Positions 1,572 to 23,324 of a DNA stretch of 64,000 nucleotides are shown piece after piece. The notes under the pieces were generated by a model that ran no database searches, was not told the DNA's origin, and worked only from the letters and a program-made list of their open reading frames with translations. The first letter of the stretch is position 1; each line of letters begins with the position of its first letter. The stretch spans positions 62,001 to 126,000 of the IMG/VR virus record IMGVR_UViG_3300025030_000041. The stretch is one strand, 5' to 3'. Made by a program: the position numbers and the translations under genes.

Positions 1572-1675
1572 CAAATAATTATAAAAGATAATATGATTTA
1601 ACATTTAAGAATCCTAAAAAGTTAAGCAAAATAAAAATAGTAATCTAAATAAATAAAAAGAAAGGGATTAATTTA

Positions 1676-1996
1676 ATGAAAAAATATGTTAAAATCTTTG
1701 AAGATTTTATAAAAGACTCCGCCAATAATATTTATAATGAAGATTTAACTGAAATTATAGGCTGGCTATTAAAATACGGAAAATCTAAATCTGGAGAATC
1801 TGTAGAAGATGAATTAATTAAATTTAAAAAAGAGTTAAATACTAAAGGCATTGGCCAAGAGACTACTGATTTTTATGAATTAGAACAATACATTAGCAAA
1901 GATGAAAAAATAGTAATTATAGACAGCCTATTTAATATATTTTTAAATTTAAATGATTATTATAGAATTAATATGATAGGTAAAAACATCAGTTAG
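1676..1996 (+). CDS. hypothetical protein with MKKYVKIFEDF leader
   Basis: ORF; shared N-terminal motif. Confidence 0.7.
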   Translation: MKKYVKIFEDFIKDSANNIYNEDLTEIIGWLLKYGKSKSGESVEDELIKFKKELNTKGIGQETTDFYELEQYISKDEKIVIIDSLFNIFLNLNDYYRINMIGKNIS

Positions 1997-2037
1997 CATT
2001 TATACAGTAGAAGGAGATTGATTAAATTGGACAGGGT

Positions 2038-2412
2038 ATGAAAGATTTTATAAATTATATTAAAGAAAATAAAAAATATCCGTCTGGATTAAATATTTTT
2101 ATTGATATTGATAAAACAATTGCAATTTTAGATATTGATAAATATGGATTAGATTATTCTAAGAGCGAGCCTATTATAGAAAATATAGAAATAGTAAATG
2201 AGTTATATGATGCTGGAAATACTATAACATTTTATTCAGCTCGAGGCGCATCTTCTAAAATAGATTGGACTGTTGAAACTATAAAACAGTTTAATAGATG
2301 GGGAGTTAAATATCATAAAATAGATTTAACAAAACCTAATTATGATATTTTCATAGACGATAAAGCAATTAATAATTTTAAAGAATTAGATTCCTATTTA
2401 AAACAATTTTAA
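2038..2412 (+). CDS. HAD-superfamily phosphatase
   Basis: DIDKT motif I, SAR motif II, KP...FIDDKA motifs III/IV. Confidence 0.8.
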   Translation: MKDFINYIKENKKYPSGLNIFIDIDKTIAILDIDKYGLDYSKSEPIIENIEIVNELYDAGNTITFYSARGASSKIDWTVETIKQFNRWGVKYHKIDLTKPNYDIFIDDKAINNFKELDSYLKQF

Positions 2413-2488
2413 CAGTTTTTAATAAAATTTTTGAGTAAATGTTAAATTAACCTTTGTTATTTTAGCTTAAAAATAACTTTAATTATAA

Positions 2489-3145
2489 ATGGTAAATCAA
2501 TTCGATTATAATAGTAATAAAGAAACTGATGAATTAAATAACAGAAATGCTGAAACTGATCCATCCAACGATATTCATAATTTGCCCGAAACTGATATAG
2601 ACTATTCTAGACATACCTCTATTGAAGAGGTATCTGATTTAAATTGGGAAATACATTTAGAAAAAGCAAAGCATAATAAAATTTATAATACGTCATATAA
2701 TGACGGAAATAATTTAAAAGATCCATGTGAATATGAATACGGTAAGTCACTTCAAATTGACGCGTCTTACTCAAATTTATATATGGAAAATTATGAACCT
2801 GCTAAATTTATTATTAATAACATCTCGCAAAAACATATAGAGTCATATATAGAAAATAATGAAGATATTAGAACCTTATTAAATTTAAATAAAACATTAG
2901 AAAAAAGAAAATTTAATAAACAAGAAATCAATACTATTTTTTCAATGATTCTTGCTGAAGTTAAACCAATATGCAATGATTATACATTTATTAGTATATT
3001 TGATACAGTAAGTAAATATACTAATATCAATTATAAAAAATTATTTGATTTTTTAGATTATCAATATAAAGAACTAATAATTTTAGAATTAAACGAAGAA
3101 TATAATATTTTAAATAATTATAATAATTTTAACGATTTTTTTTAA
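2489..3145 (+). CDS. hypothetical protein
   Basis: 218 aa ORF. Confidence 0.7.
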   Translation: MVNQFDYNSNKETDELNNRNAETDPSNDIHNLPETDIDYSRHTSIEEVSDLNWEIHLEKAKHNKIYNTSYNDGNNLKDPCEYEYGKSLQIDASYSNLYMENYEPAKFIINNISQKHIESYIENNEDIRTLLNLNKTLEKRKFNKQEINTIFSMILAEVKPICNDYTFISIFDTVSKYTNINYKKLFDFLDYQYKELIILELNEEYNILNNYNNFNDFF

Positions 3146-3148
3146 ACA

Positions 3149-3505
3149 ATGTTTATAGAACATAAAAAAGAAGCAGAGCTAAAAGACAATATTTGGGTTA
3201 ATACTATCCAATTATTAAAGTCAAAACAAGAACAATCTTATCTTTTTAATAATAAATATGGTAAATTTAATATTAAAAAACTAGATGACTATAAAATCAT
3301 AATAGAATTTTTAAATACTACATTATCTAATCTAGATAATACAGGTTTTACAATTACATCACATGATTATGATAGCATTAGTATTAAATCAAATATAATA
3401 GGGTCATCTATAGAATCTATTCCTAATAGAGATACTTTAGAAATACTTTTTGAAATTATTTCCATAGAATTAAAAAAGGAAAAATTTAAAGCCTTAGAAT
3501 TTTAA
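3149..3505 (+). CDS. hypothetical protein
   Basis: 118 aa ORF, tightly packed. Confidence 0.65.
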   Translation: MFIEHKKEAELKDNIWVNTIQLLKSKQEQSYLFNNKYGKFNIKKLDDYKIIIEFLNTTLSNLDNTGFTITSHDYDSISIKSNIIGSSIESIPNRDTLEILFEIISIELKKEKFKALEF

Positions 3506-3506
3506 A

Positions 3507-4337
3507 ATGAAATCTGCAGTATTTATTGATGCTTCAAATTTAATGCACCGGGCATTACGTATCCCTTTTGCATGGAATAGTGTTAAGAATGATCCTAATA
3601 GTAATGCCGCAGTATATTTATTTGTAAATATATTCCATAAATTATATAAAGATAATGAAGGCCGAGATTTATTTTTTGTATTAGATGGATCACCTATACA
3701 AAAAAAGTCTGAATATTCTCAATATAAAGGAAATAGACAGAAATTAGATAATATATATTATCAACAGATGAATAAAATGAAGTCTATTCTTACTAATTTT
3801 CCTATTAAAACTGCATATTGTAAAGATCGAGAAGCTGACGATATTATATACTACTTATGTAAAAATCTAAATTCAAAATACCATGAAATTTTTATTATAA
3901 GTAATGATAAAGATTTTATTCAATTAAAACAACAATTTAATAATATTAAAATATATGACCCGATTAATAATTGTTTTAGAGAACTTCCTGATAAATTAAC
4001 GGGTAAATTTACAGATTATAAGGCTTTAACAGGAGATCCTAGTGACAATATAATTAAAATATTAAGTGAGTCTAAAGCGTTTAAAGCAGCAAATGGCATA
4101 GATAAATGGAAAAGCCTAGCGAGTGACGCCCAACTAAAGCAATATATCCAAAATATTACACTAATTGATTTTACCTTATTAGATTTTTCAGGATTAGAAA
4201 TTGAGAATACTGAATATACTTTTAATAAAGAAAATATAAAAACTTTATTTGAAGAATATAAATTTAATTCAATACTTAAGAAATTTAATGAATGGTCTCA
4301 CGTATTTGAACCAAGTATTTTTAATTCATTATTTTAA
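3507..4337 (+). CDS. 5'-3' exonuclease / T4 RNase H-like (FEN family)
   Basis: FIDASN, YKGNR, EADD, SNDKDF, LTGDPSDNI motifs. Confidence 0.9.
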   Translation: MKSAVFIDASNLMHRALRIPFAWNSVKNDPNSNAAVYLFVNIFHKLYKDNEGRDLFFVLDGSPIQKKSEYSQYKGNRQKLDNIYYQQMNKMKSILTNFPIKTAYCKDREADDIIYYLCKNLNSKYHEIFIISNDKDFIQLKQQFNNIKIYDPINNCFRELPDKLTGKFTDYKALTGDPSDNIIKILSESKAFKAANGIDKWKSLASDAQLKQYIQNITLIDFTLLDFSGLEIENTEYTFNKENIKTLFEEYKFNSILKKFNEWSHVFEPSIFNSLF

Positions 4338-4354
4338 AACTAGGGGTTATTCTG

Positions 4355-4570
4355 AAAATTGATACACCTAGCAAAGAATTAAGTGATGCTGACTTTGTAA
4401 AACTTAGTGAGTTTATACGTTCACATTATGGTATAAATATACTGTATCTAAAAAAGCATGTTACAGGTACGTTTGCAAACCAGATTAAGAAAAAACAACA
4501 TTCTTACTTTTAAAGAGTATTGTAATTTTGTTTTCTCCGGTAAAAATAATGATTCAGAAGTTGTACGCGT
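4355..4570 (+). pseudogene. cheR: frameshifted fragment resembling the N-terminal domain of chemotaxis methyltransferase CheR
   Basis: Hand translation ELSDADFVKLSEFIRSHYGINI.../MLQVRLQTRLRKNNILTFKEYCNFVFS...EVV. Confidence 0.6.
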
Positions 4571-4714
4571 AATTAGTTGAAGATTATGACCGTTTATCGT
4601 TTAGTATATTAATTATCAATTAATTATATTTAATTGATATATTTAGTTCAAAAATAAAGTACCTAAAAAATTTAATATATCAAAAATATTTCTTATTTTT
4701 GTATTAAATATAAC
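4571..4714 (+). repeat. promoter cassette copy 1
   Basis: ttatcaattaattatattt...tttagttcaaaaataaagtac...ttcttATTTTTGtattaaatataac; matches the other copies. Confidence 0.85.
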
Positions 4715-4776
4715 ATGGGCATAAAAGAAATGCCGAAATTAGAAGTACAAATTATCAATTTAAAACAAAAGTAAAT

Positions 4777-5043
4777 ATGAAAAACAAAACATCAATTTTA
4801 GTAGGAGCTCGGCATTTCTTTTATGCCTTATTAGTAGCTGTTATTTTTTGCGGTTGTGGAAACGGTGAAAATTCAGTGAATGGAGAAATAGAATATAGAA
4901 CAATTGTTGTAGATAGCTGTGAGTATATTGTAAAGTATAATGGCTATCAAAGAGGGTATATGTTTTCTCACAAGGGAAATTGTAAATACTGCTACAAACG
5001 TACCCCCATTTTGGTTAGTTGCGTGAAAATATTACAAAATTAA
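4777..5043 (+). CDS. putative lipoprotein (cassette)
   Basis: Hydrophobic stretch followed by FCGC lipobox-like motif; starts inside a hairpin loop. Confidence 0.6.
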   Translation: MKNKTSILVGARHFFYALLVAVIFCGCGNGENSVNGEIEYRTIVVDSCEYIVKYNGYQRGYMFSHKGNCKYCYKRTPILVSCVKILQN

Positions 5044-5192
5044 ATTGAAACATGGATGATAAATTGGATTAAAAACTTATTTAAAAGCAGGGGAAAAACA
5101 ATTAACTAAACATGTTGTTATACACAGTATTTTGTTGGTGGGATTTGACAAATTAAAAATAAATTAGCATATTTACAAAAAAAATAAAAATT

Positions 5193-5504
5193 ATGAAAGA
5201 ATTATTTGAAAAACAATTAAACGGAACACAACCATTAACAAAAGATGTTTTAGAAAAATTACAAGTTAAAACATATTTTAATGGTGAAGAAAAACAAATT
5301 GGTGAAGTTGTATTAATGGCGATGTTAATGGGTGAAGTAATTGAAAAGGAAGGTGAATATCCAAAAGTACCATTAAAATTAATAACATTAAACGAAAGCC
5401 ATTTTAATTTATTTGAATATGATGAAAGATTTAATAGAGGTAATAAATTACCAACAATTAAATTGAAACCTTTAGTTGTGGTGGGTAAAAAATATTGCGT
5501 ATAA
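5193..5504 (+). CDS. hypothetical cassette protein
   Basis: ORF ending in TAA of TAAC. Confidence 0.65.
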   Translation: MKELFEKQLNGTQPLTKDVLEKLQVKTYFNGEEKQIGEVVLMAMLMGEVIEKEGEYPKVPLKLITLNESHFNLFEYDERFNRGNKLPTIKLKPLVVVGKKYCV

Positions 5505-5564
5505 CGTCCACAGGTATATATAGTTGCGTAAATAACATATAAAATTAATTAAAAGCGATAAAGT

Positions 5565-5798
5565 ATGAAAACAGATAAAAGTAAATTAGAAGAACAAAAG
5601 CAGCAATTGGATATACATGTTGTTAGCGGTAGTTTAACTCATATTCCTTTGTTTCAATATAATGTTGCTGTTGAATCACACGGGAATACATTAGAACTAT
5701 TGCGAATTATACAAAACGATAAAAAGGAATTAAAAGAAGAGTTAGAAGCAACATATAAAGAAATTGATAGGTTAAAGGCTAAACTAAATTACTGCTAA
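5565..5798 (+). CDS. hypothetical cassette protein, coiled coil
   Basis: QLDIHVVSGS is the translated recombination-site arm. Confidence 0.7.
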   Translation: MKTDKSKLEEQKQQLDIHVVSGSLTHIPLFQYNVAVESHGNTLELLRIIQNDKKELKEELEATYKEIDRLKAKLNYC

Positions 5799-5801
5799 TG
5801 G

Positions 5802-6065
5802 ATGAGTATAAATTTAGTAAAAATAATACAAATGAAGAATAAAGATAAACTTTGGAATTTTGTTTATGAACAAGAACCAAGACTAATGGGAGAACCATTT
5901 GGTAGATTTAACGTTAAAGTAGAAAAAGATTTTTTTATTATAGAATGTGAATTACTTACAAACTTGGAAAATCCATTTATAAATACAGAATTGAAAAAGT
6001 GTAAGGTTGATCAAAAATCTTTTACTAATTGGAAGAACAAACAAAATTCTATTATTTTTTATTGA
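5802..6065 (+). CDS. hypothetical protein encoded inside a hairpin unit
   Basis: ORF lies between and overlaps arms agtataaatttagtaaaa / ttttattgaatttatact; start may be the later Met. Confidence 0.65.
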   Translation: MSINLVKIIQMKNKDKLWNFVYEQEPRLMGEPFGRFNVKVEKDFFIIECELLTNLENPFINTELKKCKVDQKSFTNWKNKQNSIIFY

Positions 6066-6281
6066 ATTTATACTTTGTTATGTTTAACGAAGTATAGTTG
6101 TGAGAAGCGAACAATTAAACATAACGGTTGGGTGTATATGTAATGTGAGATTTGAAACACTAAACTTGAATTAACCACAAATGATGATTAGAAGTAGGAT
6201 TGTTGAATATACCACTGAACCTCACATTACATATACACCTTGTTATGTGTAGTACGGTGTTAAACTTAAATTTTAAAACTT

Positions 6282-6578
6282 ATGGATACAATAAAAATTA
6301 AATTAGAAAGTGGAAATGAATATAAATTACCAGACATTTCATCAGAAAAGTTTGATGAATATGTTTGGAAAAGTGGTAGTAATGACGTTGAATATGAGAA
6401 ATATAAACGTGAAAACGGAATGATGGAATTAACTGACTTTAATTCTCAAACGACTAGTGAAATCACATTAGTGGTAGAACAATCTTGGAGAGGTAGAGTT
6501 TTAAAATTTAAGTGTGTTTATGATTTTGATAACGATGAAAACTTTGATGAAAAGGAATATTTCGGAGAACATGAGTAG
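6282..6578 (+). CDS. hypothetical acidic cassette protein
   Basis: ORF inside GTTATGTGTAGTAC...GTATTACACATAA body. Confidence 0.7.
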   Translation: MDTIKIKLESGNEYKLPDISSEKFDEYVWKSGSNDVEYEKYKRENGMMELTDFNSQTTSEITLVVEQSWRGRVLKFKCVYDFDNDENFDEKEYFGEHE

Positions 6579-6587
6579 TATTACACA

Positions 6588-6697
6588 TAAATATTATATA
6601 TATATATATACATGTATGTTTAAACTATAATAAAATCAATAGTATGAACGAAAAAATTATAAAGATTTGTAAACAAAAACTTATATATTTAACGTAA
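6588..6697 (+). pseudogene. attI-like terminal site plus putative truncated integrase start (MNEKIIKICKQKLIYLT)
   Basis: Near-identical inverted copy at 46900-47002; same layout as the site upstream of the intact integrase. Confidence 0.55.
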
Positions 6698-6752
6698 TGT
6701 AAAAAACTATTTTGATACATTAAAAATAATTAGTTATAATAGAGTCTAGTAT

Positions 6753-7403
6753 ATGGAATTTAATAAATTTATTAATATACACACTGATAAAACTGCAATA
6801 ATCTGTGGGTGTGGTCAGTCTTTAAATCTTATTAAAGACCGAGTAGATATACTAAATAATGAGAATATAATTACAATAGGAGTAAATGATGTTGCTAAAT
6901 TATTTACTCCTACTTATACGGTGGTTGTAGATTCTCCTAATAGATTTACTAACAATAGAAACTTGCTTATTACAAAAAGTAGTAGCTATATTTTTACACA
7001 AATCGTTGATTGGAAAATTGAATCTGGAAAAAAAGTATTATTTAAACTTGGATTAAAATCTAAATTAGAAAATCTTTATGATAAAAATAATATTATAGAT
7101 TATAGTAATAACTCTCCATATATGGCATGTATTATTGCATATAAAATGGGGTGTCATACAATCGCATTAATTGGAGTAGATTTTACATTAAATCATTTTT
7201 ATGCAGAAGATGGTGAACATAATTTAATTAAAGCAAATAGACTGAATGAAATTAATAATGATTATATAAATTTATATAATGCTTTCAAAATAAAAAATGT
7301 AAATTTATATAATTTAAGTGAAAATAGTAAAGTATTAGGTATACCTAAGCTTAATATTAATGAAATATTAAAAATACATACTAATAATGAAAGTAATAAC
7401 TAA
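6753..7403 (+). CDS. DUF115/MptE-like (glycosyltransferase-related) protein
   Basis: AIICGCGQSL, TIGVN, IALIGVDF motifs. Confidence 0.6.
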   Translation: MEFNKFINIHTDKTAIICGCGQSLNLIKDRVDILNNENIITIGVNDVAKLFTPTYTVVVDSPNRFTNNRNLLITKSSSYIFTQIVDWKIESGKKVLFKLGLKSKLENLYDKNNIIDYSNNSPYMACIIAYKMGCHTIALIGVDFTLNHFYAEDGEHNLIKANRLNEINNDYINLYNAFKIKNVNLYNLSENSKVLGIPKLNINEILKIHTNNESNN

Positions 7404-7623
7404 AGAATTAAAAGAAGTAGACGTACTTAAAGATATAGTGTGTGACTCATGTGGTAAAATGTGTAATACGGAGTATGGATTTGAATATCTAAAATTAAGT
7501 GCAAATTGGGGATTTGGAAGTTCTAAAGATTTGAAAGAATGGAACGCTCACCTTTGCGAAAACTGTACAGATAAAAAACTAGATTTTATTAAATTCAAAA
7601 TTACAAACTACCATCCATTATAA
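7387..7623 (+). CDS. hypothetical zinc-binding protein
   Basis: CDSC...CENC. Confidence 0.65.
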   Translation: MKVITKELKEVDVLKDIVCDSCGKMCNTEYGFEYLKLSANWGFGSSKDLKEWNAHLCENCTDKKLDFIKFKITNYHPL

Positions 7624-7634
7624 ATAAATATATT

Positions 7635-7841
7635 ATGACTACTGAAACCTTAGAACACATAAAAAACTTATATTCTACTCAAGATGAATATAGAGCTAAA
7701 AGTAATGAATTTAAAATAAAGGGATTATTATCAGATGACCCTAATGAAAAAATAAGTCTTAAAAAACAGGAAAGCCTATATTTTGAAAAAATGTCGGATA
7801 TTAATTCTAAAATAACTAAAATACTAAATCAAGAACAATAA
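7635..7841 (+). CDS. hypothetical protein
   Basis: ORF. Confidence 0.55.
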   Translation: MTTETLEHIKNLYSTQDEYRAKSNEFKIKGLLSDDPNEKISLKKQESLYFEKMSDINSKITKILNQEQ

Positions 7842-7879
7842 TTCTAAATAAACTATTATAAATTCTAATTTTTTAAAAT

Positions 7880-8197
7880 ATGTCAGGCGGACACTTTGAT
7901 TACCAGCAATATCATGTTAGTAATATTGCAGATTCTATTGAAAATGAACTTAATAAACAGGGTACTTTAAAACCAAAGGATGAGCTATATTATACCGATG
8001 AGTATTATAGTAAATATCCTGATGAAAAATATTATGCAGCTTATCCTATTGAAATTCAAGAAAAAATGAAAGATGCTATAAAAATACTAAGAACTGCTGC
8101 AATATACGCTCACCGAATTGATTGGTTATTATCTGGAGATGATGGAGAAGAGTCTTTTCTTGAAAGATTGAAAGAAGAACTTGATAAATTAGAATAA
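7880..8197 (+). CDS. hypothetical phage protein
   Basis: ORF with MSGGHFDY start and DWLLSGDDGEESF. Confidence 0.75.
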   Translation: MSGGHFDYQQYHVSNIADSIENELNKQGTLKPKDELYYTDEYYSKYPDEKYYAAYPIEIQEKMKDAIKILRTAAIYAHRIDWLLSGDDGEESFLERLKEELDKLE

Positions 8198-8236
8198 TTA
8201 AAATTCTATTAATTTAAAAATTGAATAAATAATAAC

Positions 8237-8827
8237 ATGGAATATGTTAAATTATTTGAAGCTTACCATAATATTATAAATGTTCCACTACCTCGAGTTT
8301 ATAGTAAAGACAAAAAATTTAGTTCTGCAGTTAATGGAAATAATAACACATTATCTCCTATTGGTTTTTATGAAATTAAAAATGCAATAGAAGAAAAAAT
8401 ACCGTTTACAATTATAACAGTTTGGAATAATAAAAATAAAGAAATTGATAACAAATTATTAATAGAAGAACTTTCTATAAATTTATTAAAACTTAATTTT
8501 AAATTTGCAGTACAAGAAGGAGTAACGCGAGCTGAAGATAATATAGGAGATAGACAAAAACTTAAATTTGAACAAAATATTTTTATATTGAAACCTAAAG
8601 AAATGTCAGATATTAATTTTTTAAGAATGATTAAATCTATAGTAGAATCAAATAAACAAACTAAATTTATATATGGGTTTACTAAAAAAAGAGATGGTAT
8701 TTTTCTATGGAGAAAAAATCAAAAATCTATAAAAATTGGTAAAGAACTGATAAATAGCACCGAGTACTTACCTGAAGACTTAGAGTGTTATTTTAATATT
8801 AATGGAATAAAATATATTTTTATTTAA
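8237..8827 (+). CDS. hypothetical protein with MEYVKLFE leader
   Basis: ORF preceded by AATAAATA. Confidence 0.7.
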   Translation: MEYVKLFEAYHNIINVPLPRVYSKDKKFSSAVNGNNNTLSPIGFYEIKNAIEEKIPFTIITVWNNKNKEIDNKLLIEELSINLLKLNFKFAVQEGVTRAEDNIGDRQKLKFEQNIFILKPKEMSDINFLRMIKSIVESNKQTKFIYGFTKKRDGIFLWRKNQKSIKIGKELINSTEYLPEDLECYFNINGIKYIFI

Positions 8828-10815: not shown

Positions 10816-12519
10816 ATGGCAATAGATTTAAACTTACTTAAAGATCATAATACTAGACAAGATTATATTAATACTTTAACTAAAGACGAACTTAAAGCAT
10901 TAATTAATAAACTCAAACTGCAAGATAGTGCATTTAAGATTATATTAAATAGCTATTATGGTTCATCAGGTCAAAATTCCTTCGCATTTTTCAATTTAGA
11001 CATAGCGGCGTCAATAACTTTGCAAGGTCAAGATATTATTAAGTATACGGATAAGGTAATAGAACATTATTTTATTAATGAGTGGCATCTTGATAAAGAG
11101 CTTCATAAAAAATTAAGTATAGATCATTTAAAAATTAATCCTATAAAAATAACAAAAGGGCCACCTATAATATATGTTGACACGGATAGCGTCAACGAAA
11201 ATTCAATAATTTATGTAAAAAATATAGGAAAAATTAAAATTAAAGATTTTTTTAAATTATGTTATAAAATTAATAGTATTATTAAATTAAAAAATGGGAA
11301 TGAGATAATTGGTATTTCTAATTTTAGAATATTAAATTTTAATAATACCTTATATTATGCAAAACCTAAAAAACTGATTAGGCATAAAGTAAAAAAGAAA
11401 AAATGGTTATTGAGGTCTAAGTCTGGAAAATCAATAATATGCACAGAAGATCATTCACTAATTGTATTTCACGATGGAATACAATTAAAAATTAAGCCAT
11501 CTGAAATTAATACAAAAATTGATAAAATTTTAACAATTAACGAATTAGACTTAAATTTTAATTATCAATTTGAAGATATATCTGAATGTAAATGTATAGG
11601 TGAATTCGAAGATGAGTGGGTATATGATATTGAAATGGATGATGCAACTCATACGTTTATTGCTAATGATATTTTAGTTCACAATTCTGGTTATATTAAT
11701 TATGATTATATTATAAAGTCGATAGAGGGGTTTGATACATTAAAAATAAGTCCTATATTATTTGCAGCTGATATAATTAAATATAGGATGAATTCTTATT
11801 TAAATAATAAATTTGAAGAATACGCTAAGTCGTATAATGCAATAAACACCCATGATTTTAAATTAGAGCATATTAGTAATAGTGGTATTTTTATTGCAAA
11901 AAAAAATTATATATTAGATGTTGCATTTGAGGATAGACTATTACCTGAGTCGTATTTATTACCTAAGGGGTTTGATTTAGTAAAAGCGTCTTTACCAAAA
12001 TGGGCACGGGCTAAAGGTACAGAATTAATTAAGATTATTTTAAAGAATGGCGACTCTTTAAATATGGATGAGATATTAAATAAATTATTAGAATATAAAG
12101 AAGAATTTAAAGGGCTACACCCTGATGAGTTTAGTATGAATTTTAATCTACGAACATTTAAAAAATATGTCATTAAAGATGACGATCAATTAGTATTTGC
12201 AAAAGGCGCATCTATCTATCCAAGGTCCGCTGGTTATTATAACCATTTATTATATAAGCAAACTGATAATATACGCAAAAAATATAAAAAGGTAAGAACC
12301 GGAGATAAGGTTAGATTTTATAATTGTATGCCTGATGATACGTATAAGATAGATGCATTTAGTTATTTACCTGGAAAATTTCCAATTGAGTTTGCGCCTC
12401 ACGTAGATTATGATGAGCAATTTAATGTTATTATTTTAAATCCATTGAATAGGGCTCTAGAAGCTATGGATATGCCATTAATAGAAAAAAATGTAATGTA
12501 TTTTAATGATTTGTTTTAA
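10816..12519 (+). CDS. family B DNA polymerase, C-terminal subunit (split gp43-like), intein-containing
   Basis: KIILNSYYG (motif B), YVDTD/S (motif C), KKNY, KG; no exonuclease or motif A. Confidence 0.9.
   Translation: MAIDLNLLKDHNTRQDYINTLTKDELKALINKLKLQDSAFKIILNSYYGSSGQNSFAFFNLDIAASITLQGQDIIKYTDKVIEHYFINEWHLDKELHKKLSIDHLKINPIKITKGPPIIYVDTDSVNENSIIYVKNIGKIKIKDFFKLCYKINSIIKLKNGNEIIGISNFRILNFNNTLYYAKPKKLIRHKVKKKKWLLRSKSGKSIICTEDHSLIVFHDGIQLKIKPSEINTKIDKILTINELDLNFNYQFEDISECKCIGEFEDEWVYDIEMDDATHTFIANDILVHNSGYINYDYIIKSIEGFDTLKISPILFAADIIKYRMNSYLNNKFEEYAKSYNAINTHDFKLEHISNSGIFIAKKNYILDVAFEDRLLPESYLLPKGFDLVKASLPKWARAKGTELIKIILKNGDSLNMDEILNKLLEYKEEFKGLHPDEFSMNFNLRTFKKYVIKDDDQLVFAKGASIYPRSAGYYNHLLYKQTDNIRKKYKKVRTGDKVRFYNCMPDDTYKIDAFSYLPGKFPIEFAPHVDYDEQFNVIILNPLNRALEAMDMPLIEKNVMYFNDLF
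11188..11685 (+). mobile_element. mini-intein (166 aa) in DNA polymerase motif C
   Basis: Starts at S after YVDTD, block B CTEDH, block F VYDIE, ends LVHN followed by S; no endonuclease domain. Confidence 0.9.
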
Positions 12520-13131: not shown

Positions 13132-13169
13132 AACTATTCAGTTTAGCCTCACCCATATATAATACACAA

Positions 13170-13301
13170 AGAGTATTATATTTATCATTTAGTAGATTGA
13201 TTATCAATTAATTATATTTACTTGTTATATTTAGTTCAAAAATAAAGTACTAAAAATGTTAATATATCAAAAACATTTCTTATTTTTGTATTAAATATAA
13301 C
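13170..13301 (+). repeat. promoter cassette copy 2
   Basis: agtagattgattatcaattaattatatttacttGTTAtatttagttcaaaaataa...ttatttttgtattaaataTAAC. Confidence 0.9.
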
Positions 13302-13344
13302 AGTTTGCAGGTTTATTTAGTTGCGACTTTAAAAACGAAAAATT

Positions 13345-13515
13345 ATGATAACAGAAAAACAATACTTAAAAGCGAAAAAGTTAATTGCAGACTACGAAAG
13401 CCAGCAATTGAATAAACATGTTGTTATAAGCAGTAAGCCGACCTCAAAAAAGAAGAAGGTGATTATAGATGCAGATAAATTTTCAAAGATGTGTGATGTT
13501 ATTAAACGGATATAG
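13345..13515 (+). CDS. hypothetical cassette peptide, 56 aa (not in ORF track)
   Basis: MITEKQYLKAKKLIADYESQQLNKHVVISS... Confidence 0.65.
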   Translation: MITEKQYLKAKKLIADYESQQLNKHVVISSKPTSKKKKVIIDADKFSKMCDVIKRI

Positions 13516-13587
13516 GCTTATTGCTGCTAACGTTCATCAGATATATTCAGTTCTGATTTTAATATATAACTAAAATAAATTAATAAG

Positions 13588-13845
13588 ATGAAAGATAGAA
13601 AACATATAAAAACATTTGAAGATAAGACATCAGAATTGAATATATCTGATGTTATAAGTAGTAAAACTAAGGAAGAAATTCTAAAATTGATAAAAAGTTT
13701 AGATGATAGAGGGTATTTTTATATTTTCAATAATAGAGAGGATTTTGTAGAGGGTAGAACAGATTGGGATGATTTAAAAGATACTTGTGAAAACTTTTAT
13801 TATGTTATTGAAAATATAAAAGAATTAATAGAAAGAAATGAGTAG
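13588..13845 (+). CDS. hypothetical cassette protein with KHIKTFED leader
   Basis: ELNISDVISS is the translated site. Confidence 0.7.
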   Translation: MKDRKHIKTFEDKTSELNISDVISSKTKEEILKLIKSLDDRGYFYIFNNREDFVEGRTDWDDLKDTCENFYYVIENIKELIERNE

Positions 13846-13925
13846 TTTTATTACTTATAACGTGCCGCAGCTTGACGCTGTTGGCGATTTGAAACACGAA
13901 TTTTAATTAAACAACAAAAGTAAAT

Positions 13926-14270
13926 ATGGAAACGAAAACTTCAATTAACAACGAAACCGCCAATAGCGTTCAAGGTACTGTTAGGCGTAGGGCGGACATC
14001 AATCAGGAGATTGCCGAAAAATGGGAATTAATCGCTCAAATCAAAACAGAAATAGTTGCCTTGAAAAAAGAGGAACTTCTATTGTGTGATGACCACCAAA
14101 GATTTGAGGAAACGGAAGAAGAAATAACAATTTCAAGGCGACCAAAGAAAACCGAAAAGCGATTAATTGGGCGTATTCATTGGAAGGAAGAATTTAAGGA
14201 TGAAGATACAGAGCAATCTATTTGGATTGAGCGTTCACAGGTTGTTCGCGTCAATGGTGTGTGGCAGTAG
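13926..14270 (+). CDS. hypothetical cassette protein
   Basis: ORF; more GC-rich than the backbone. Confidence 0.75.
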   Translation: METKTSINNETANSVQGTVRRRADINQEIAEKWELIAQIKTEIVALKKEELLLCDDHQRFEETEEEITISRRPKKTEKRLIGRIHWKEEFKDEDTEQSIWIERSQVVRVNGVWQ

Positions 14271-14382
14271 CCTTACGCCTAACGTTTTGCGTATATGTGA
14301 AGTACGCATAGCAGAAACTTGAAATTAAATACAAACCTTAATGGCGTATTTCACATATACGCTGTTAGCAAATCGTAAAATT

Positions 14383-14559
14383 ATGACTAAGAAAGATATT
14401 TTAAAATTAGTAGAAGAAACATTCAGCGAAGAAATTTCAACTTCTTGTGCTGAAACTGTATTAGGACTTGAAAGTTGGATTGATGGTAAAGAAGAATTTA
14501 TGGAAAAGTTAGCAGAGAAGTTGAAATTGTTATTTGATGATAACGACTTATCTAAATAA
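14383..14559 (+). CDS. hypothetical cassette protein
   Basis: Start at 14383 or 14341. Confidence 0.6.
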   Translation: MTKKDILKLVEETFSEEISTSCAETVLGLESWIDGKEEFMEKLAEKLKLLFDDNDLSK

Positions 14560-14571
14560 TTTTATGTTTGC

Positions 14572-14731
14572 TAACGTTCTGTAAATATGATTAGTTGAAG
14601 AGTACTGTCATTTATAATTTAGTAGATTGATTATCAATTAATTATATTTACTTATTATATTTAGTTCAAAAATAAAGTACTAAACGTGTTAATATATCAA
14701 AAATATTTCTTATTTTTGTATTAAATATAAC
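14572..14731 (+). repeat. complete promoter-only cassette (copy 3)
   Basis: TAAC-gttct-GTAAATATGATTAGTTGA...TCAATTAATTATATTTAC-tt-ATTA-body-TAAC; no ORF. Confidence 0.9.
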
Positions 14732-14757
14732 GGCTACAGATAAACTCAGTTTTTATT

Positions 14758-14979
14758 ATGGAAAAGAAAATATATTACGAAAACAATTGGTTAAATCAGC
14801 ACTTAAATAAAGTTGGATTGCTCGATAAAAAATTGAGTTTATCTGATGTTATGTGTTGTGTTTGTGGGTCGGAACTCACAATTCAAGAGAATGAAGAAAA
14901 TCTAACTTATGATGTTAGAGAACGAATATGTGATAAATGTAATAGTGAGTTGAGCGAGGAAAGAAAACATTGCATATAA
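14758..14979 (+). CDS. hypothetical zinc-ribbon cassette protein
   Basis: CCVC...CDKC; stop is part of TAAC. Confidence 0.7.
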   Translation: MEKKIYYENNWLNQHLNKVGLLDKKLSLSDVMCCVCGSELTIQENEENLTYDVRERICDKCNSELSEERKHCI

Positions 14980-14997
14980 CGGCATCCGCTATGAGTA

Positions 14998-15291
14998 GTG
15001 GCGGATTTAGAACTACTCACTTTAAATTTAGCACAAATGACAATAGAAAGCACAGAACATCAAGAAAGCACTAACCCGCCATTACTTATATCGAGTGTTA
15101 GCGGTAGTGTTTTTCGTCCGAAGAATGGACACGAATTACTGCAAGCATTGAAAGAAAATAAACAATGTGAGATAGTAGATACACACGCATTTTTAGCAAC
15201 AAAAGCACTTGAAGACAACCATTGCGGATTTTCATTTTCTTTCAAGCTGTCAAAGTGGAATAAAGGATGGTCAGGTTTCGAGTGGTCTTAA
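14998..15291 (+). CDS. hypothetical cassette protein (integrase-proximal)
   Basis: LLISSVSGS translated site; start may be ATG 15037. Confidence 0.65.
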   Translation: MADLELLTLNLAQMTIESTEHQESTNPPLLISSVSGSVFRPKNGHELLQALKENKQCEIVDTHAFLATKALEDNHCGFSFSFKLSKWNKGWSGFEWS

Positions 15292-15300
15292 CATTACCGC

Positions 15301-15320
15301 TAACTATTATATATATACAA
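15301..15320 (+). other. attI-like terminal recombination site (TAAC-TAT-(TA)5)
   Basis: Last TAAC has no partner hairpin and lies 37 bp before the integrase ATG. Confidence 0.6.
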
Positions 15321-15340
15321 GTACGCTTAATATATTGAAT

Positions 15341-16156
15341 ATGAATACTAAATTTGATTGTATTATCAGAAAATTTGAAAAAACTCTGATAATAAAAAAT
15401 TATTCAACATGTACTATTAATAATTATAAAAGTTGTCTTTATAACTTTTTAATAGAAATAAACAATGATCCATACCATTTAAATTTAGAACAGTTAAACA
15501 ACTATTTATTTAATTTTAATTATTCGTCAGTATCACAGCAAAATCAAATACTTAATTCTTTAAAAATATTCTATTTATTAATTTTAAAAAAATCAATAAA
15601 ACATTTAATTAAAATTAAAAGACCACGAAGAGAAAAGAAATTACCACAAGTAATTTCGCATGATGAAATTGTGCAATCAATTTCCAAAATACAAAACTTA
15701 AAACATAAAGCTATCATATCGCTAGCATATAGTAGTGGATTAAGAGTTTCAGAAATATGTAATCTTAAATTAGAAGACATAGATTCAAAAAGAATGCTAA
15801 TTTTAGTTAAATCAGGAAAAGGAAGAAAAGATAGAGTTGTACCTCTTTCAAATCATATTTTAGGGCTTTTAAGAAAATACTATCTTAAATACAAACCTGA
15901 GTTTTATCTTTTTGAAAGCTATGCTCATGGAGTTAAATATTCTACTTCAAGTTGTAGGCAAATTTGGAATAATTTTAAAATTAATAAAAATTCAACTTTT
16001 CATACATTGAGGCATTCATGCTTTACAAATCTTTTAGAAAATGGAACGGACATACGAATAATTCAAAAAATAGCAGGGCATTCATCAATAAAAACTACAG
16101 AAATTTATACTCACATATCAACTAATATCTTAAATAAGATTAAATTACCAATTTAA
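15341..16156 (+). CDS. tyrosine recombinase / integrase (271 aa)
   Basis: SGLRVSE (R), GKGRKDR (K), HTLRH, GHSSIKTTEIY; N-terminal SAM-like domain; the track start 15209 overlaps a cassette, so 15341 is preferred. Confidence 0.95.
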   Translation: MNTKFDCIIRKFEKTLIIKNYSTCTINNYKSCLYNFLIEINNDPYHLNLEQLNNYLFNFNYSSVSQQNQILNSLKIFYLLILKKSIKHLIKIKRPRREKKLPQVISHDEIVQSISKIQNLKHKAIISLAYSSGLRVSEICNLKLEDIDSKRMLILVKSGKGRKDRVVPLSNHILGLLRKYYLKYKPEFYLFESYAHGVKYSTSSCRQIWNNFKINKNSTFHTLRHSCFTNLLENGTDIRIIQKIAGHSSIKTTEIYTHISTNILNKIKLPI

Positions 16157-19861: not shown

Positions 19862-21613
19862 CTATCTTTTCCAAACAAAAATATAGTTACCACTATTATA
19901 ACATTCTTTATAATCCAATCCATGCATTATCTCAAACTCCGTTTTATCAATACTATAATTACTTAATTTATGCTTAACGTAAACTTGTCTATTATACCTC
20001 TTATAATTTTTAGTATAAAAATACCCAGGTCTAGACTCTCCTAAATAATCAAACCCCATATTAATATAAACATTTTCGTCAAATCTAAACGCCCAATCTC
20101 TATTAGAATACGTTAAAACCAAATTAATTTCACTATACTTATTAATAAAATAAGAAAATAACCTATTAGCTGCCCCAATAACATTAGTATTCAACTTATT
20201 ACAAAACCTATACAACTCTAAATCATATTTTTCCTTGTTTTTATTCCCATACCTAATCTTTCCAAATGTCATCAAACTAACTAACTCCTCTCCATAATAC
20301 AAACCTATATTATATTTACTCATACACTTGCCCTGCAAATGATTATCTTCTAAAAATTTATTAGACTCTTTAAACGATACTTCTCGTATCACACACTTCC
20401 TAGAATATATCCTATTAGGAGTTTTATTTAAAAGGTTAAGTATACGTGATTTAATAATATTTTTTCTATATAACCAATCATCTTCCCATATATGAACTAG
20501 ATGGACCTTTTGTTTTATACAATTAACGGTTTTATTTAAATGATAATTTTTATTTTTTAGTATTACATTATTATGTGCATAAAAACTATTATATTCAAAT
20601 GCTAAGTTTAATTCAGGTATATAAATATCTAATTCCTTTGGTGAAATAACAGTTCTATTATTTTGAATAACATTAAAGTCAGTATTATTTTTAATAAATT
20701 CATAAATTTCAGTTTGACAAATACTTGAGCTTAATGGATTACAATTTAAGCATGGAGTTTCTATTTTATATTTTTCTACTCTTTGCTGTAAAAGATTATT
20801 ATTAATAATATATTCAGTATTACATTTATCACATAGTATAGTTATATCTCTATCATAATCTACATTAATAATATTTAAGTTTGGATATTGCGCTAGTATT
20901 CGTTTTCTAGTTTTTTCTAGTTTTTTCTTTTTAATTTCTTCTCTATTTATCTTAAGAGATTCTATTCCAGCTAATCTAACTTCAGGAACTTGAAATGGAT
21001 GAAAATATTTTCCATTAGTTTTTTCTATAAATGTCTTTCTCTTTTTTTCTTTTAGTTTAATACTACTATCAGTTCCTTTTCCATAATTTTTTGAAAAAGT
21101 ATTTGATGCTTTTTCTTTAACCCAACTAATTTGTTTAATATTGTCTACACCATACTTATCTCTAATTGTATCTTTTCTTTTTAAATACGCAGTATTTCCT
21201 TTCGCTAATGGGTTATCCTCTCCTTTTAAATGCTTATGATTTCCAGAAATATGATTCTTAATATACTTTTCTTTCTTTTTAAGTTTAACGTCTAAATCAT
21301 TATTAATACATTTCATACTACAATATACTGAATATCCTAATGACAACCCTCTAAATTTAGGGAAATTAATCTTACAACACTTACATATAGGTACACAGTT
21401 CAATTCATAAATATAATGATAAATCTGTTGTGTAAATGATAGATCTATCAAATCATTTAATTTACTATTCTCTTCTATTAAATTAAATAAATCAGGATTA
21501 TTATTATTTAACTTTTTTCTGACACACTTCCACCCTGATTTATTATCAGTCATAAAATATTCTAATACTTCAGTTTTCATTTTTCCATTCAAATTTATAA
21601 TTTCCACAATCAT
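19862..21613 (-). CDS. putative homing endonuclease (Hef/Vsr-like PD-(D/E)XK) paralog 1
   Basis: KYGVDN repeats, ELDIYIPELNLAFEYN, HIWEDDW, C-terminal NHLQG...ELYRFC domain. Confidence 0.7.
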   Translation of the reverse strand: MIVEIINLNGKMKTEVLEYFMTDNKSGWKCVRKKLNNNNPDLFNLIEENSKLNDLIDLSFTQQIYHYIYELNCVPICKCCKINFPKFRGLSLGYSVYCSMKCINNDLDVKLKKKEKYIKNHISGNHKHLKGEDNPLAKGNTAYLKRKDTIRDKYGVDNIKQISWVKEKASNTFSKNYGKGTDSSIKLKEKKRKTFIEKTNGKYFHPFQVPEVRLAGIESLKINREEIKKKKLEKTRKRILAQYPNLNIINVDYDRDITILCDKCNTEYIINNNLLQQRVEKYKIETPCLNCNPLSSSICQTEIYEFIKNNTDFNVIQNNRTVISPKELDIYIPELNLAFEYNSFYAHNNVILKNKNYHLNKTVNCIKQKVHLVHIWEDDWLYRKNIIKSRILNLLNKTPNRIYSRKCVIREVSFKESNKFLEDNHLQGKCMSKYNIGLYYGEELVSLMTFGKIRYGNKNKEKYDLELYRFCNKLNTNVIGAANRLFSYFINKYSEINLVLTYSNRDWAFRFDENVYINMGFDYLGESRPGYFYTKNYKRYNRQVYVKHKLSNYSIDKTEFEIMHGLDYKECYNSGNYIFVWKR

Positions 21614-23324
21614 ACACTCTATAAATATTCCGGCTTAGCATTATCTCATGCCCTGTCATATTCTTATCGTATCCTTCTCTTACTAATACATCCTTCCTAA
21701 AATTAAACCTATGCCTCCTTACTCCATCTATAACATACCAATAATTAGGTCCACTTGTACTAGCATACCTAAATCCTAACTTAATATATAAATTATCATC
21801 CTTATAATTTGTCCAACCCTGGTCGGCATAACTTATAATTTTATATGGATTATATGTTTCTATAAAATATTTAAATAGTTTAGAGGCCGCTCCTACTACA
21901 CTAGTATTTAACTTATTGCAAAACCTCAATAACTCATACTCGTCAATCTTATTTTTACTGCCTAATGACTTCCTCAATTTACCAAATGTCATCAAACTTA
22001 CTAACTCCTCCCTGTTATACAAACCTATATTGTATTTACTTACGCACTTTCCCTGCAAATGATTATCTTCTAAAAACTGATTAGACTCTTTAAACGACAC
22101 TTCTCTAACCCCGCACTTCCTAGAATATATCCGATTAGGAGTCTTATTTAAAAGGTTAAGAATTCGTGATTTAATAATATCTTGCTTAAATACCCAGTTA
22201 TCCTCAAATATGTGAATTAAGGTTATACCAGTTTTATTACACTCAAACGTTTTATTTAAATGATAATTATTGCCTTTAAATAACTCATTATGCCAATATA
22301 CTCCATTAAATTCAAATGCTAATTTATAATCAGGTAAATATGCATCTAATTCATTATATTTAAAATTTTTTAAAACTTTTTTATTCTCATATACATATTC
22401 ATTAGACTTAACATTATCTTTTATAAAATTTAATAACTCTTTTTCAGCAATAGAACATTTTTTAAAAATAGGAGGATTACCCTTGCGACATGGGGAAGTT
22501 TTAAATTTAATACATCTATTAAATGGTCCAACTAAAATATCAAAAATTGAATTACAACTATTACAACTTACAGTATAGGATTTCATATTATACTCTATGA
22601 TGATATTAATATTTAAAAAATCGTTAGATATTTTCTTTTTTATATTTAAAGCGTTTAAACTTTTAGTTTTACCACTCCTTTTACCTATATCTTTAAATTG
22701 TGATACATTTTTTACATTATATTTTTTTAAATTAGTTTGTTTAGTTTTTTCTTTAATAATACTACTAGCTAATCCTACTCCATTATATAATCTCATGTGC
22801 GTATCAAGAGCTTTCTGTTTTATTTCATTAGACTGTAAAGGAGATTCTACACCATATAAATTGAGCGTCGTATTCTTATATGTTTCTCTTACTTTAGGAT
22901 TAGACCAATTATGATAATACCCAGTTTTTTCAAAACACTTCTGCTTAAATTTATTTTTAGCATCATTATTTTTTAAAAAATGGTCTTCACCATATTTTTT
23001 TTTACACGTATTTTTAAAAGAATCATTCTTAGATTTTATCTTACATTCTTTATTTCCACATGTTTTATGATAATACCCTGTAAATAATAATGGATTATTA
23101 CAATAATTGCACCTTTTAATTTCTTTTATATCATATATTAAACTATGTATTCTTTGAGTTATTGAAGCGCTTATTAAATCTAAATAGGAAGTCTCAATAA
23201 CTATAATTTTATTAAAACTCTCACGATTCTTTGCTAAAAGAACTAATGAACTATACCTTATATTAGATGACTCCTTTATATGTTTAATTTCATTAAACAA
23301 AAATTCTCTATTGTATACTTTCAT
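21570..23324 (-). CDS. putative homing endonuclease (Hef/Vsr-like PD-(D/E)XK) paralog 2
   Basis: KKYG repeats, ELDAYLPDYKLAFEFNGVYWH, same C-terminal domain. Confidence 0.7.
   Translation of the reverse strand: MKVYNREFLFNEIKHIKESSNIRYSSLVLLAKNRESFNKIIVIETSYLDLISASITQRIHSLIYDIKEIKRCNYCNNPLLFTGYYHKTCGNKECKIKSKNDSFKNTCKKKYGEDHFLKNNDAKNKFKQKCFEKTGYYHNWSNPKVRETYKNTTLNLYGVESPLQSNEIKQKALDTHMRLYNGVGLASSIIKEKTKQTNLKKYNVKNVSQFKDIGKRSGKTKSLNALNIKKKISNDFLNINIIIEYNMKSYTVSCNSCNSIFDILVGPFNRCIKFKTSPCRKGNPPIFKKCSIAEKELLNFIKDNVKSNEYVYENKKVLKNFKYNELDAYLPDYKLAFEFNGVYWHNELFKGNNYHLNKTFECNKTGITLIHIFEDNWVFKQDIIKSRILNLLNKTPNRIYSRKCGVREVSFKESNQFLEDNHLQGKCVSKYNIGLYNREELVSLMTFGKLRKSLGSKNKIDEYELLRFCNKLNTSVVGAASKLFKYFIETYNPYKIISYADQGWTNYKDDNLYIKLGFRYASTSGPNYWYVIDGVRRHRFNFRKDVLVREGYDKNMTGHEIMLSRNIYRVYDCGNYKFEWKNEN

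Follow-up and report, generated by a model that had tools for sequence, protein, structure and literature searches.

An integron-like array of hairpin-bounded gene cassettes upstream of a Xer-like recombinase gene in a large phage

Integrons are regarded as a bacterial, and recently archaeal, invention that depends on the IntI-specific domain to read folded attC DNA. As defined for IntegronFinder (PMC4889954), an integron carries an integrase with an IntI-specific insertion near patch III (the intI_Cterm region), an attI site next to the integrase at the end of the array, and promoterless cassettes whose genes read away from intI and are expressed from Pc. The attC sites are imperfect hairpins of 57-141 nt with conserved AAC...GTT, with R and L boxes separated by an unpaired spacer, a variable terminal loop and low sequence conservation. 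Extrahelical bases in the L box direct the strand choice, and G·T mispairs are in excess on the recombinogenic strand, 1.24 against 0.39 (PMC5027507). Clusters of attC-like hairpins (CALINs and attC sites) have been reported in virulent phages, including a Bacteroidota (Polaribacter) phage, with DNA methylase cargo (Qi et al. 2023, PMC9892861). T4-type phages shuffle small ORFs through promoter-stem-loop motifs, PeSLs, and produce mini-circles (PMC2839356, PMC4122927). In Acinetobacter plasmids, pdif modules are bounded by conserved 28-bp duplex sites in alternating inverted orientation, which are used by host XerC/XerD (PMC7399989).

The locus described here belongs to a 246-kb phage (IMG/VR record IMGVR_UViG_3300025030_000041), and was analysed in a window of 64,000 nt, positions 62,001 to 126,000 of that record; all coordinates refer to this window. 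An earlier note, made from the sequence alone, had proposed an integron-like cassette system next to a non-IntI tyrosine recombinase, and the tiling by inverted-repeat-bounded segments it noticed was confirmed. Positions 13168-15304 are tiled by seven TAAC-hairpin-GTTA-body-TAAC units. The cores lie at TAAC 13298, 13528, 13858, 14280, 14572, 14728, 14977 and 15301, and at GTTA 13423, 13651, 13980, 14364, 14848 and 15097, with ATTA at 14654, and every segment between successive cores has inverted-repeat ends. The main array contains seven hairpins and not about 12, as the note had it. When folded as ssDNA, 13528-13654, 14280-14367 and 14728-14851 are strong hairpins (z -3.5 to -4.6, 0-1 of 200 shuffles as good), 13858-13983, 14977-15100 and 14572-14655 are weaker (z -1.0 to -1.5), and 13298-13426 is marginal.

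The array, all on the plus strand, opens with a left boundary module, 13168-13301, consisting of a degenerate 5' part and a non-coding mini-body from GTTA (13224) to TAAC (13298), possibly regulatory. It holds the first copy of a 122-nt direct repeat, D1 (13180-13301 and 14610-14731, 96% identical), which the note had missed and which is itself built like a non-coding cassette. At least 5 copies of D1 occur in the window, and it was found at 5-12x depth in contigs of the source sample. Cassette 0 (13298-13531) has the weak hairpin 13298-13426, the body 13423-13531 with complementary ends and a G·T at position 7, and ORF 13345-13515 (56 aa). Cassette 1 (13528-13861) has the hairpin 13528-13654 with 23-nt arms, 96% complementary (z -3.95), the body 13651-13861, and ORF 13588-13845 (85 aa), which starts in the hairpin loop. 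Cassette 2 (13858-14283) comprises the hairpin 13858-13983, the body 13980-14283 and ORF 13926-14270 (114 aa), with about 40% G+C against about 22% for the genome; a 42% identical protein sits in a TAAC/GTTA cassette of another phage contig. Cassette 3 (14280-14575) comprises the hairpin 14280-14367 (z -4.57), the body 14364-14575 and ORF 14383-14559 (58 aa). Cassette 4 (14572-14731) is non-coding and contains the second D1 copy, with the hairpin 14572-14657, whose 3' core is ATTA, and the mini-body 14654-14731. Cassette 5 (14728-14980) comprises the hairpin 14728-14851 (z -3.46), the body 14848-14980 and ORF 14758-14979 (73 aa, CxxC pairs), again starting in the loop. Cassette 6 (14977-15304), proximal to the integrase, comprises the hairpin 14977-15100, the body 15097-15304 and ORF 15037-15291 (84 aa), with about 38% G+C. 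The body of cassette 6 recurs with other hairpins, and the hairpin with other bodies, in L168-L174 and L001 (L numbers are our labels for the loci and contigs compared).

The array ends with an attI-like site, 15301-15340, which was not noticed in the note. Here the lone terminal TAAC, 36 nt before the integrase ATG at 15341, is followed by TATTATATATA and about 25 more nt. The conserved motif TAAC-TAYNATATA abuts the last cassette about 36-50 nt before the start codon. In the form [TC]AAC-TANNWTATA the motif lies within 260 nt upstream of the recombinase in 59 of 72 viral loci, against 3 of 75 cellular loci, and it abuts the last cassette in 27 distinct loci. The function of the site is inferred.

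The gene at 15341-16156 (+) encodes a tyrosine recombinase of 271 aa, Xer/IntI-related, in which the catalytic R135, K160, H221, R224, H247 and Y256 are present; these residues are invariant in 16 homologues. The absence of the IntI insertion, claimed in the note, was confirmed. Against VchIntIA (2a3v) the match splits, with query 21-179 aligned to 18-179 and query 204-260 to 250-306, so that query residues 179-204 face chain residues 179-250 and about 46 residues are missing. The IntI models TIGR02249 and NF011946 gave 170.7 bits in 2 stretches (cut-off 265) and 108.8 (cut-off 435), respectively. The best end-to-end sequence match was to archaeal XerA (4a8e 1.9e-36, 5hxy 1.7e-34), but the enzyme stayed below the NCBIfam cut-offs for XerA (194.6 bits, cut-off 220), XerC (150.8, cut-off 335) and XerD (148.3, cut-off 330) as well.

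Further units were found elsewhere in the window. A second, partly degenerate array without a recombinase lies at 4570-5799 (+), with a D1 copy at 4602-4714, the hairpin 4711-4833 (4711-4832 as folded, z -6.58) with the lipoprotein-like ORF 4777-5043, the body 5117-5505 (ORF 5193-5504) and a cassette 5502-5799 (ORF 5565-5798) ending in TAAT. A solitary cassette at 6122-6610 (+) has the hairpin 6122-6245 (19/19 arms, z -4.07) and the body 6242-6591 (ORF 6282-6578), ending in TAAA followed by TATTATATATATA, which resembles the attI-like site. On the minus strand, a D1 copy plus a TAAC-hairpin-GTTA unit is found at 48452-48638, upstream of the minus-strand gene 47846-48364, and a further D1 copy at 60266-60377.

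The same architecture was found in dozens of uncultured phages. In 78 IMG/VR loci with 50-64% identical recombinases we found 295 TAAC..GTTA hairpins, in 57 of the loci, against 1-11 for six control core pairs and 34 for the overlapping CTAA/TTAG. When 80 loci were counted, duplicates included, 298 hairpins lay upstream and 3 downstream of the recombinase gene. The array plus recombinase architecture is conserved, with fixed polarity, in about 60 independent phage contigs, and the platform sits in different phage gene contexts. More is conserved than the 4-nt cores and the structure, to which the note had limited conservation. The consensus of 241 unique hairpins is ATTRCNYA-TAAC-G(G/T)TTG-arm...arm'-T-GTTA-TRNGYAGT, with a 5-nt unpaired stretch on the 5' side and 1-2 nt on the 3' side. 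The stems are ungapped over 19-20 bp, and their positions 1-10 and 15-18 are 93-100% Watson-Crick with all four pair types, while the control with arms swapped between hairpins gave 34%. Body ends pair in 178 cassettes, of which 172 carry a G·T mispair at position 7. There were 1.47 G·T mispairs per hairpin when the coding strand folds, against 0.09 for the other strand, and the loops are 59% purine on the coding strand. Cassette genes are co-directional with the recombinase in 170 of 174 cassettes and point towards it, opposite to canonical integrons, which the note did not observe. The start codon lies in the hairpin loop in 57 of 170 cassettes. The cargo includes orphan DNA methylases and an RNA ligase.

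Cassette order and content differ between close relatives. A 960-bp cassette that is 99.9% identical is integrase-proximal in L049 and L050 but internal in L066, and another is proximal in L078 and internal in L049 and L066. Single cassettes 93-99% identical are shared by otherwise unrelated arrays (L018/L060, L018/L046, L012/L029, L042/L043). Homology starts at TAAC in 12 of 21 high-identity matches and ends at TAAC(G) in 10 of 21, and the flanks share only TAACG(GTTG). Exchange was also seen at GTTA, where bodies and hairpins re-assort, which was likewise absent from the note and which a single crossover point at TAAC does not explain. No recombination event, circle or junction read was seen in the assembled contigs, and the two samples holding this phage have identical arrays; mobility is seen on evolutionary time, and recombination itself is inferred. 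Contigs break within 1.2 kb upstream of the recombinase in 19 of 80 loci, against 3 of 80 downstream.

We consider an integron-like gene capture and shuffling platform, native to large phages and run by a non-IntI Xer-like recombinase, as the best reading of these data, with a probability of roughly 0.75. Computable predictions of the interpretation in the note held. Each mobile unit runs from one TAAC to the next and consists of a 19-20-bp hairpin with a variable 10-90-nt loop, then GTTA, a small gene, and a tail that pairs with the sequence just after GTTA. When the coding strand is single-stranded, which is inferred, the tail plus TAAC pairs with GTTA plus head to give an R-box-like duplex of about 15 bp with a fixed G·T mispair, while the hairpin arms give an L-box-like duplex, and the 5-nt unpaired spacer separates the two, as in a folded attC site. 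By analogy with AA|C in attC, the adjacent recombinase is inferred to cleave at or in TAAC and to exchange strands between two such sites, which would excise or reorder cassettes, possibly through circular intermediates, or with the conserved site in front of its own gene, which would insert them. However, the insertion by which IntI contacts extrahelical bases of folded attC is absent and no extrahelical bases exist in these stems, and recognition of single-stranded DNA is therefore unproven; asymmetry comes instead from the 5-nt against 1-2-nt spacer and from the G·T mispairs. Read on the folding strand, the order of cassettes, attI-like site and integrase is the same as in a canonical integron read on its bottom strand, with the difference that cassette genes are sense on that strand, and therefore point towards the integrase with the hairpin 5' of each gene. 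Expression presumably comes from signals inside the array, such as the repeated non-coding D1 cassette, rather than from a Pc promoter.

Other explanations were found less likely. In a PeSL-like scheme the hairpins and D1 would be composite promoter/terminator stem-loops, cassettes would move by homologous recombination of the phage between short repeats, and the recombinase would be a bystander. Indeed, D1 is a multi-copy module in front of genes, and in L049, L050 and L066 the hairpins are 95-100% identical to each other, so homologous recombination could shuffle those arrays, and a 3-variant SNP in the spacer tracks the upstream body. In the window and in most arrays, however, neighbouring hairpins are unrelated in sequence, and shared cassettes such as that of L018/L060 have flanks with only 9 common bases, too little for homologous exchange. 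Neither the fixed polarity and adjacency to one recombinase clade nor the conserved terminal site is explained by this model, and no intrinsic-terminator-like sites were found in the array; we regard it as unlikely. A role of the hairpins and paired body ends in the mRNA, in stability, processing or translation control of each small gene with mobility being secondary, is slightly less probable still. The folding strand is also the sense strand and the mispairs would be G·U in RNA, hence the asymmetry could reflect an RNA function, and start codons often lie in the loops. Yet an RNA role predicts neither breakpoints at TAAC, nor the attI-like site, nor the link to a recombinase, the Rfam scan gave no match, and the same G·T bias is a known property of DNA attC sites. 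The two roles could coexist.

The Xer-like enzyme, the re-assortment of both kinds of segment and the consensus A(T/C)TRCNYA-TAAC shared by both junctions would also fit double-stranded, dif-like sites in alternating orientation, recombined by ordinary two-strand exchange. We hold this to be improbable, since there is no conserved 11-6-11 site, only about 12 nt of consensus are present, and the flanks of the core vary and covary with a distant partner, which only base pairing explains. The two junction types would have spacers of about 9 and 5-6 nt, and the strand-specific G·T pattern has no meaning in duplex DNA. An inversion switch of shufflon type or hairpin-guided HUH transposition, suggested by inverted-repeat ends next to a tyrosine recombinase, is very unlikely, as 170 of 174 cassettes keep one orientation, no inverted variants appeared among shared cassettes, and no HUH or transposase domain was found in the neighbours scanned.

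It is about as likely as not that these phages carry a separate, or ancestral, lineage of integrons in which a Xer-like recombinase without the IntI insertion recombines folded single-stranded hairpin sites, with hairpin-leader modules and gene bodies exchangeable separately because both strands of the site can be used. Such a lineage would give large virulent phages their own site-specific system for acquiring, stockpiling and reordering accessory and anti-defence genes. A widespread system of this kind would show that the hairpin-recombination strategy does not require the IntI insertion, which bears on how IntI evolved from Xer (PMC4792948). It would also give a mechanism for the fast turnover of small accessory genes in large phages, including orphan methylases and RNA-repair enzymes that look like counter-defence cargo. 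Search tools keyed on intI_Cterm would then miss a whole class of platforms. Homologous recombinases are very numerous in metagenomes, with 219 IMG/VR hits and thousands of proteins, all labelled only XerD. The system appears to be undescribed, as no description of it turned up in the literature we searched.

Compared with bacterial integrons, the locus shares arrays of single-gene cassettes next to a tyrosine recombinase gene, structure-defined sites with AAC...GTT at the hairpin base, two paired boxes with an unpaired spacer and a variable loop, a site length of 40-170 nt against 57-141 for attC, G·T mispairs favouring one strand, complementary cassette ends and a distinct terminal site abutting the integrase. 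It differs in the recombinase, in the lack of extrahelical bases, in an R-box-like pairing of 14-17 bp with a fixed G·T instead of about 7 bp, in the strand of the cassette genes, in having no Pc-type arrangement, in non-coding cassettes inside the array and in exchange at the GTTA side, and the hosts are large, apparently lytic phages. The phage CALINs of Qi et al. (PMC9892861) were sparse clusters (2 or more sites, 17 phages) found using integron models, without a cognate recombinase, and were tested with bacterial IntI1, while here a dedicated non-IntI recombinase, a terminal site and comparative evidence of turnover define a phage-borne system; no deposited phage in the collection searched has a homologue above 36% identity. 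With archaeal XerA and bacterial XerC/XerD the enzyme has in common its length, two-domain layout and catalytic residues, but the gene is not next to a dif-like site and is encoded by phages beside a cassette array. The PeSL cassettes likewise involve small novel ORFs in large myoviruses, flanked by stem-loop-containing repeats, and D1 is a repeated promoter-like module, but PeSLs are conserved-sequence motifs that act through homologous recombination and need no dedicated recombinase, whereas the sites here differ in sequence, covary, have comparative breakpoints at TAAC and are tied to a recombinase gene. As in the pdif modules, the segments look inverted-repeat-bounded and re-assort independently and the enzyme is Xer-type, but the site flanks are variable and paired with a distant partner.

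The window is part of the IMG/VR contig 3300025030_000041, 246 kb in length, which originates from a groundwater metagenome. The contig encodes a major head protein, a prohead protease, a baseplate wedge, a family B DNA polymerase with an intein and several HNH endonucleases, and is therefore assigned to a large tailed phage with a G+C content of about 22%. In window 10816-12519 and 19862-23324, the family B DNA polymerase fragment contains an intein splicing domain, and two tandem ORFs of about 583 aa match homing/HNH endonuclease families. The host is only guessed to be a member of Bacteroidota, based on the closest cellular homologues.

Between positions 13168 and 15304 the cores TAAC and GTTA alternate. 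Each segment running from TAAC to GTTA is a hairpin of 84-129 nt, while each segment from GTTA to TAAC, hereafter a body, has ends which pair over 10-15 nt beyond the core. Three hairpins fold far better than shuffled sequences (z -3.5 to -4.6), three are moderate and one is marginal, and in all of them the minimum-energy fold pairs the two ends. Six of the units carry an ORF of 56-114 aa, none of which was assigned to a Pfam or PHROG family at accepted levels. One unit is non-coding and is a copy of a 122-nt repeat, designated D1, which also forms the left border. Units 2 and 6 have a G+C content of 38-40%. The array ends at TAAC 15301-15304, followed by TATTATATATA and 25 further nt, and then by the ATG of a tyrosine recombinase of 271 aa.

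The D1 module of about 120 nt was found in at least five copies within the 64 kb, at 4602-4714, 13190-13301 and 14620-14731 on the plus strand, and at 48527-48638 and 60266-60377 on the minus strand, and it reaches 5-12x depth in the contigs of the source sample. It is built like a non-coding cassette and carries TATTTTTG on both strands of its palindromic part. A promoter or operator role is plausible but not shown. The sigma-70 promoter scan performed no better than on shuffled sequences. Scans against Rfam and for terminators gave no findings, and a search for motifs in the loops revealed only A-rich, loosely similar loops. A second, partly degenerate cassette array without a recombinase gene is located at 4570-6610 and holds a D1 copy, three cassettes and a solitary cassette. 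This array ends in TAAT (5796-5799), while the solitary cassette at 6122-6591 ends in TAAA followed by a TATTATATATATA run like the attI-like site in front of the recombinase gene. One of the cargo ORFs (4777-5043) looks like a lipoprotein.

The recombinase has the SAM-like and the catalytic domains and aligns end to end with archaeal XerA structures. Against the Vibrio integron integrase it aligns in two pieces, with about 46 residues missing where IntI has its specific insertion. Its scores are below the curated cut-offs of the XerA, IntI, XerC and XerD models. The residues R135, K160, H221, R224, H247 and Y256 are present, and they are invariant among 16 homologues.

IMG/VR contains at least 219 relatives, of which 80 loci were retrieved, all at 50-64% identity apart from two copies of this phage. 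A simple finder (TAAC, an offset of up to 8 nt, an ungapped stem, GTTA) gave 295 hairpins in 814 kb, whereas six control core pairs gave 1-11 and the overlapping CTAA/TTAG gave 34. This finder is crude and misses gapped or core-variant sites. Loci without hits still show the array end when read by eye. In the 80 loci, duplicates included, 298 hits lie upstream of the recombinase and 3 downstream. The motif [TC]AAC-TANNWTATA lies within 260 nt upstream of the gene in 59 of 72 viral loci. The flanking genes differ between loci and are typical phage replication and RNA-repair genes, and the platform therefore occurs in diverse phages.

In contrast, cellular homologues at 40-48% identity mostly lack the array (17 hairpins in 650 kb), and the motif was found in only 3 of 75 cellular loci, all of them short MAG contigs holding the closest homologues. 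However, two long contigs, L121 of 535 kb (labelled Bacteroidetes; 5090-6000) and L149 of 224 kb (labelled only as “bacterium”; 4160-6000), carry recombinase homologues at 45-47% identity. Upstream of each are TAAC-hairpin-GTTA cassettes whose ORFs lie on the opposite strand, which is the canonical integron polarity, and a different terminal sequence, suggesting a cellular sister system. In Aquimarina litoralis (7616-8805 of the retrieved locus), three TAAC..GTTA hairpin repeats of about 163 nt, spaced 512 nt apart, lie downstream of a 44% identical recombinase homologue. Ten isolates of the Polaribacter Freya phages (records MT732463-MT732472) differ by up to 4.9 kb in genome length, all of it upstream of a 35% identical integrase (position 65 to 4162; Freya_10 locus, 1-4962), but no TAAC/GTTA hairpins are present in this variable block. 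The DNA search against deposited phages gave only a 103-nt match of one hairpin to a 642-kb uncultured phage (LR756502.1). This huge phage has the same kind of hairpin/body units at 5990-7140, one hairpin being 81% identical to window 14988-15090, as well as a 70-nt direct repeat ending in TAAC (6608-6680 and 7010-7078). No recombinase homologue was found at E<=1e-20 anywhere in the record, or at E<=1e-5 in the 12 kb retrieved.

The consensus derived from 241 unique hairpins is ATTRCNYA-TAAC-G(G/T)TTG, then a stem of 19-20 bp, a loop of about 10-90 nt, and T-GTTA-TRNGYAGT, with 5 unpaired nt on the 5' side (192 of 241) and 1-2 on the 3' side. Stem positions use all four Watson-Crick pairs at 93-100% pairing, while arms taken from different hairpins pair at only 34%. 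The body ends pair in 178 cassettes, and in 172 of them position 7 is a G·T mispair. Over the arms there are 1.47 G·T mispairs per hairpin if the coding strand folds and 0.09 if the other strand folds. Integron attC sites show the same kind of bias towards the strand that is recombined (PMC5027507). In three loci, L029 (about 800-870), L077 (about 4965-5040) and L165 (about 4300-4380), a recurrent sequence containing GAAGGTGGGG, in L029 and L077 also AAGCAAATTAGAT, lies at or next to the hairpin position, directly after TAAC-G... in L077 and L165. It may be another hairpin family or a small insert.

In 170 of 174 unique cassettes the longest ORF runs in the same direction as the recombinase, and the median length is 86 aa. 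The ATG lies in the hairpin in 57 cassettes, and 47 of these read GTT as a codon. We considered whether this constant frame signals leader-swapping by design, but rejected this reading, since the conserved sequence after GTTA leaves only that frame open. Among the 40 longest cassette proteins there are four DNA methylases, an RNA ligase and a 3'-5' exoribonuclease, while most have no family.

Comparison of arrays pointed to mobility of the cassettes, although no direct evidence of recombination was obtained. In the three related contigs L049, L050 and L066, which come from different samples, a 960-bp cassette (99.9% identical) is next to the recombinase in two of them and 2.4-3.4 kb away in the third. 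An 1828-bp block is shifted by 1.15 kb, and L049 also carries the end of that cassette a second time. Cassettes 93-99% identical are shared by arrays that share nothing else. Of 21 matches of at least 150 nt and 90% identity, 12 begin at TAAC and 10 end at TAAC or TAACG(GTTG), one ends at GTTA and one ends 11 nt after GTTA. In several of the rest, homology begins at TAAC, runs through the hairpin, and stops in its loop or in the start of the gene. At short distances the hairpin therefore travels with the gene downstream of it, which fits the array end, where a body is followed by TAAC and the terminal site, and also fits the end of the solitary cassette at 6122-6591. At longer distances, bodies and hairpins re-assort. 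The body of cassette 6, the unit closest to the recombinase in the window, occurs with at least four different upstream and five different downstream hairpins, and its hairpin occurs with three other bodies, the junction being exactly at GTTA.

Contigs end within 1.2 kb upstream of the recombinase in 19 of 80 loci, against 3 of 80 downstream, as expected if arrays are repetitive or heterogeneous in populations. The two samples containing this phage have the same array, and a metagenome scan with the junction between the attI-like site and the integrase gene recovered only the source contig. Among assembled Logan contigs, those from other groundwater samples covered cassettes 0, 1 and 6 but not 2, 3 and 5, at 2-5x depth, which is suggestive only. 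Joints detected in these contigs were not considered, since they had sides under 30 nt or came from other D1 copies.

Read on the coding strand, each unit has the order C-spacer-hairpin-GTTA-gene-tail-TAA, followed by the terminal site and the recombinase gene. This is the layout of a canonical integron read on its bottom strand, where cleavage is between A and C of AAC. We therefore propose, as the most likely mode of action, that the coding strand folds and that the tail-TAAC:GTTA-head duplex and the arms act as R and L boxes. The enzyme would exchange one strand at TAAC, either between two cassette sites or with the terminal site, although the catalyst, the single-stranded substrate, the cleavage point and circular intermediates are all inferences. 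Rare use of the complementary strand, or a second kind of event, would give exchange at GTTA.

Homologous exchange between stem-loop repeats, as for the PeSLs of T4-type phages, can explain arrays with near-identical hairpins, but it can explain neither breakpoints with 9 shared bases nor the tie to one recombinase clade. A role at the RNA level fits the G·U-compatible asymmetry and the start codons in loops, and may coexist with recombination, yet it predicts neither the breakpoints nor the terminal site. A duplex dif-like mechanism is contradicted by the covariation with a distant partner, whilst inversion is contradicted by the uniform orientation of the cassettes.

Phage CALINs and a few IntI-bearing temperate phages have been reported previously (PMC9892861), but no dedicated non-IntI recombinase, terminal site or cassette turnover was described there. 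Full-text searches of the literature gave no description of the present system, although the collection searched was incomplete and prior description cannot be excluded. Among complete bacterial genomes, the authors of IntegronFinder found only 21 tyrosine recombinases without the IntI region near attC sites in genomes with no IntI elsewhere in the replicon. The differences between the phage system and integrons are real, i.e., there is no IntI insertion, there are no extrahelical bases, the R-type pairing is longer and carries a fixed G·T, the genes are inverted relative to the site, and non-coding cassettes occur inside the arrays.
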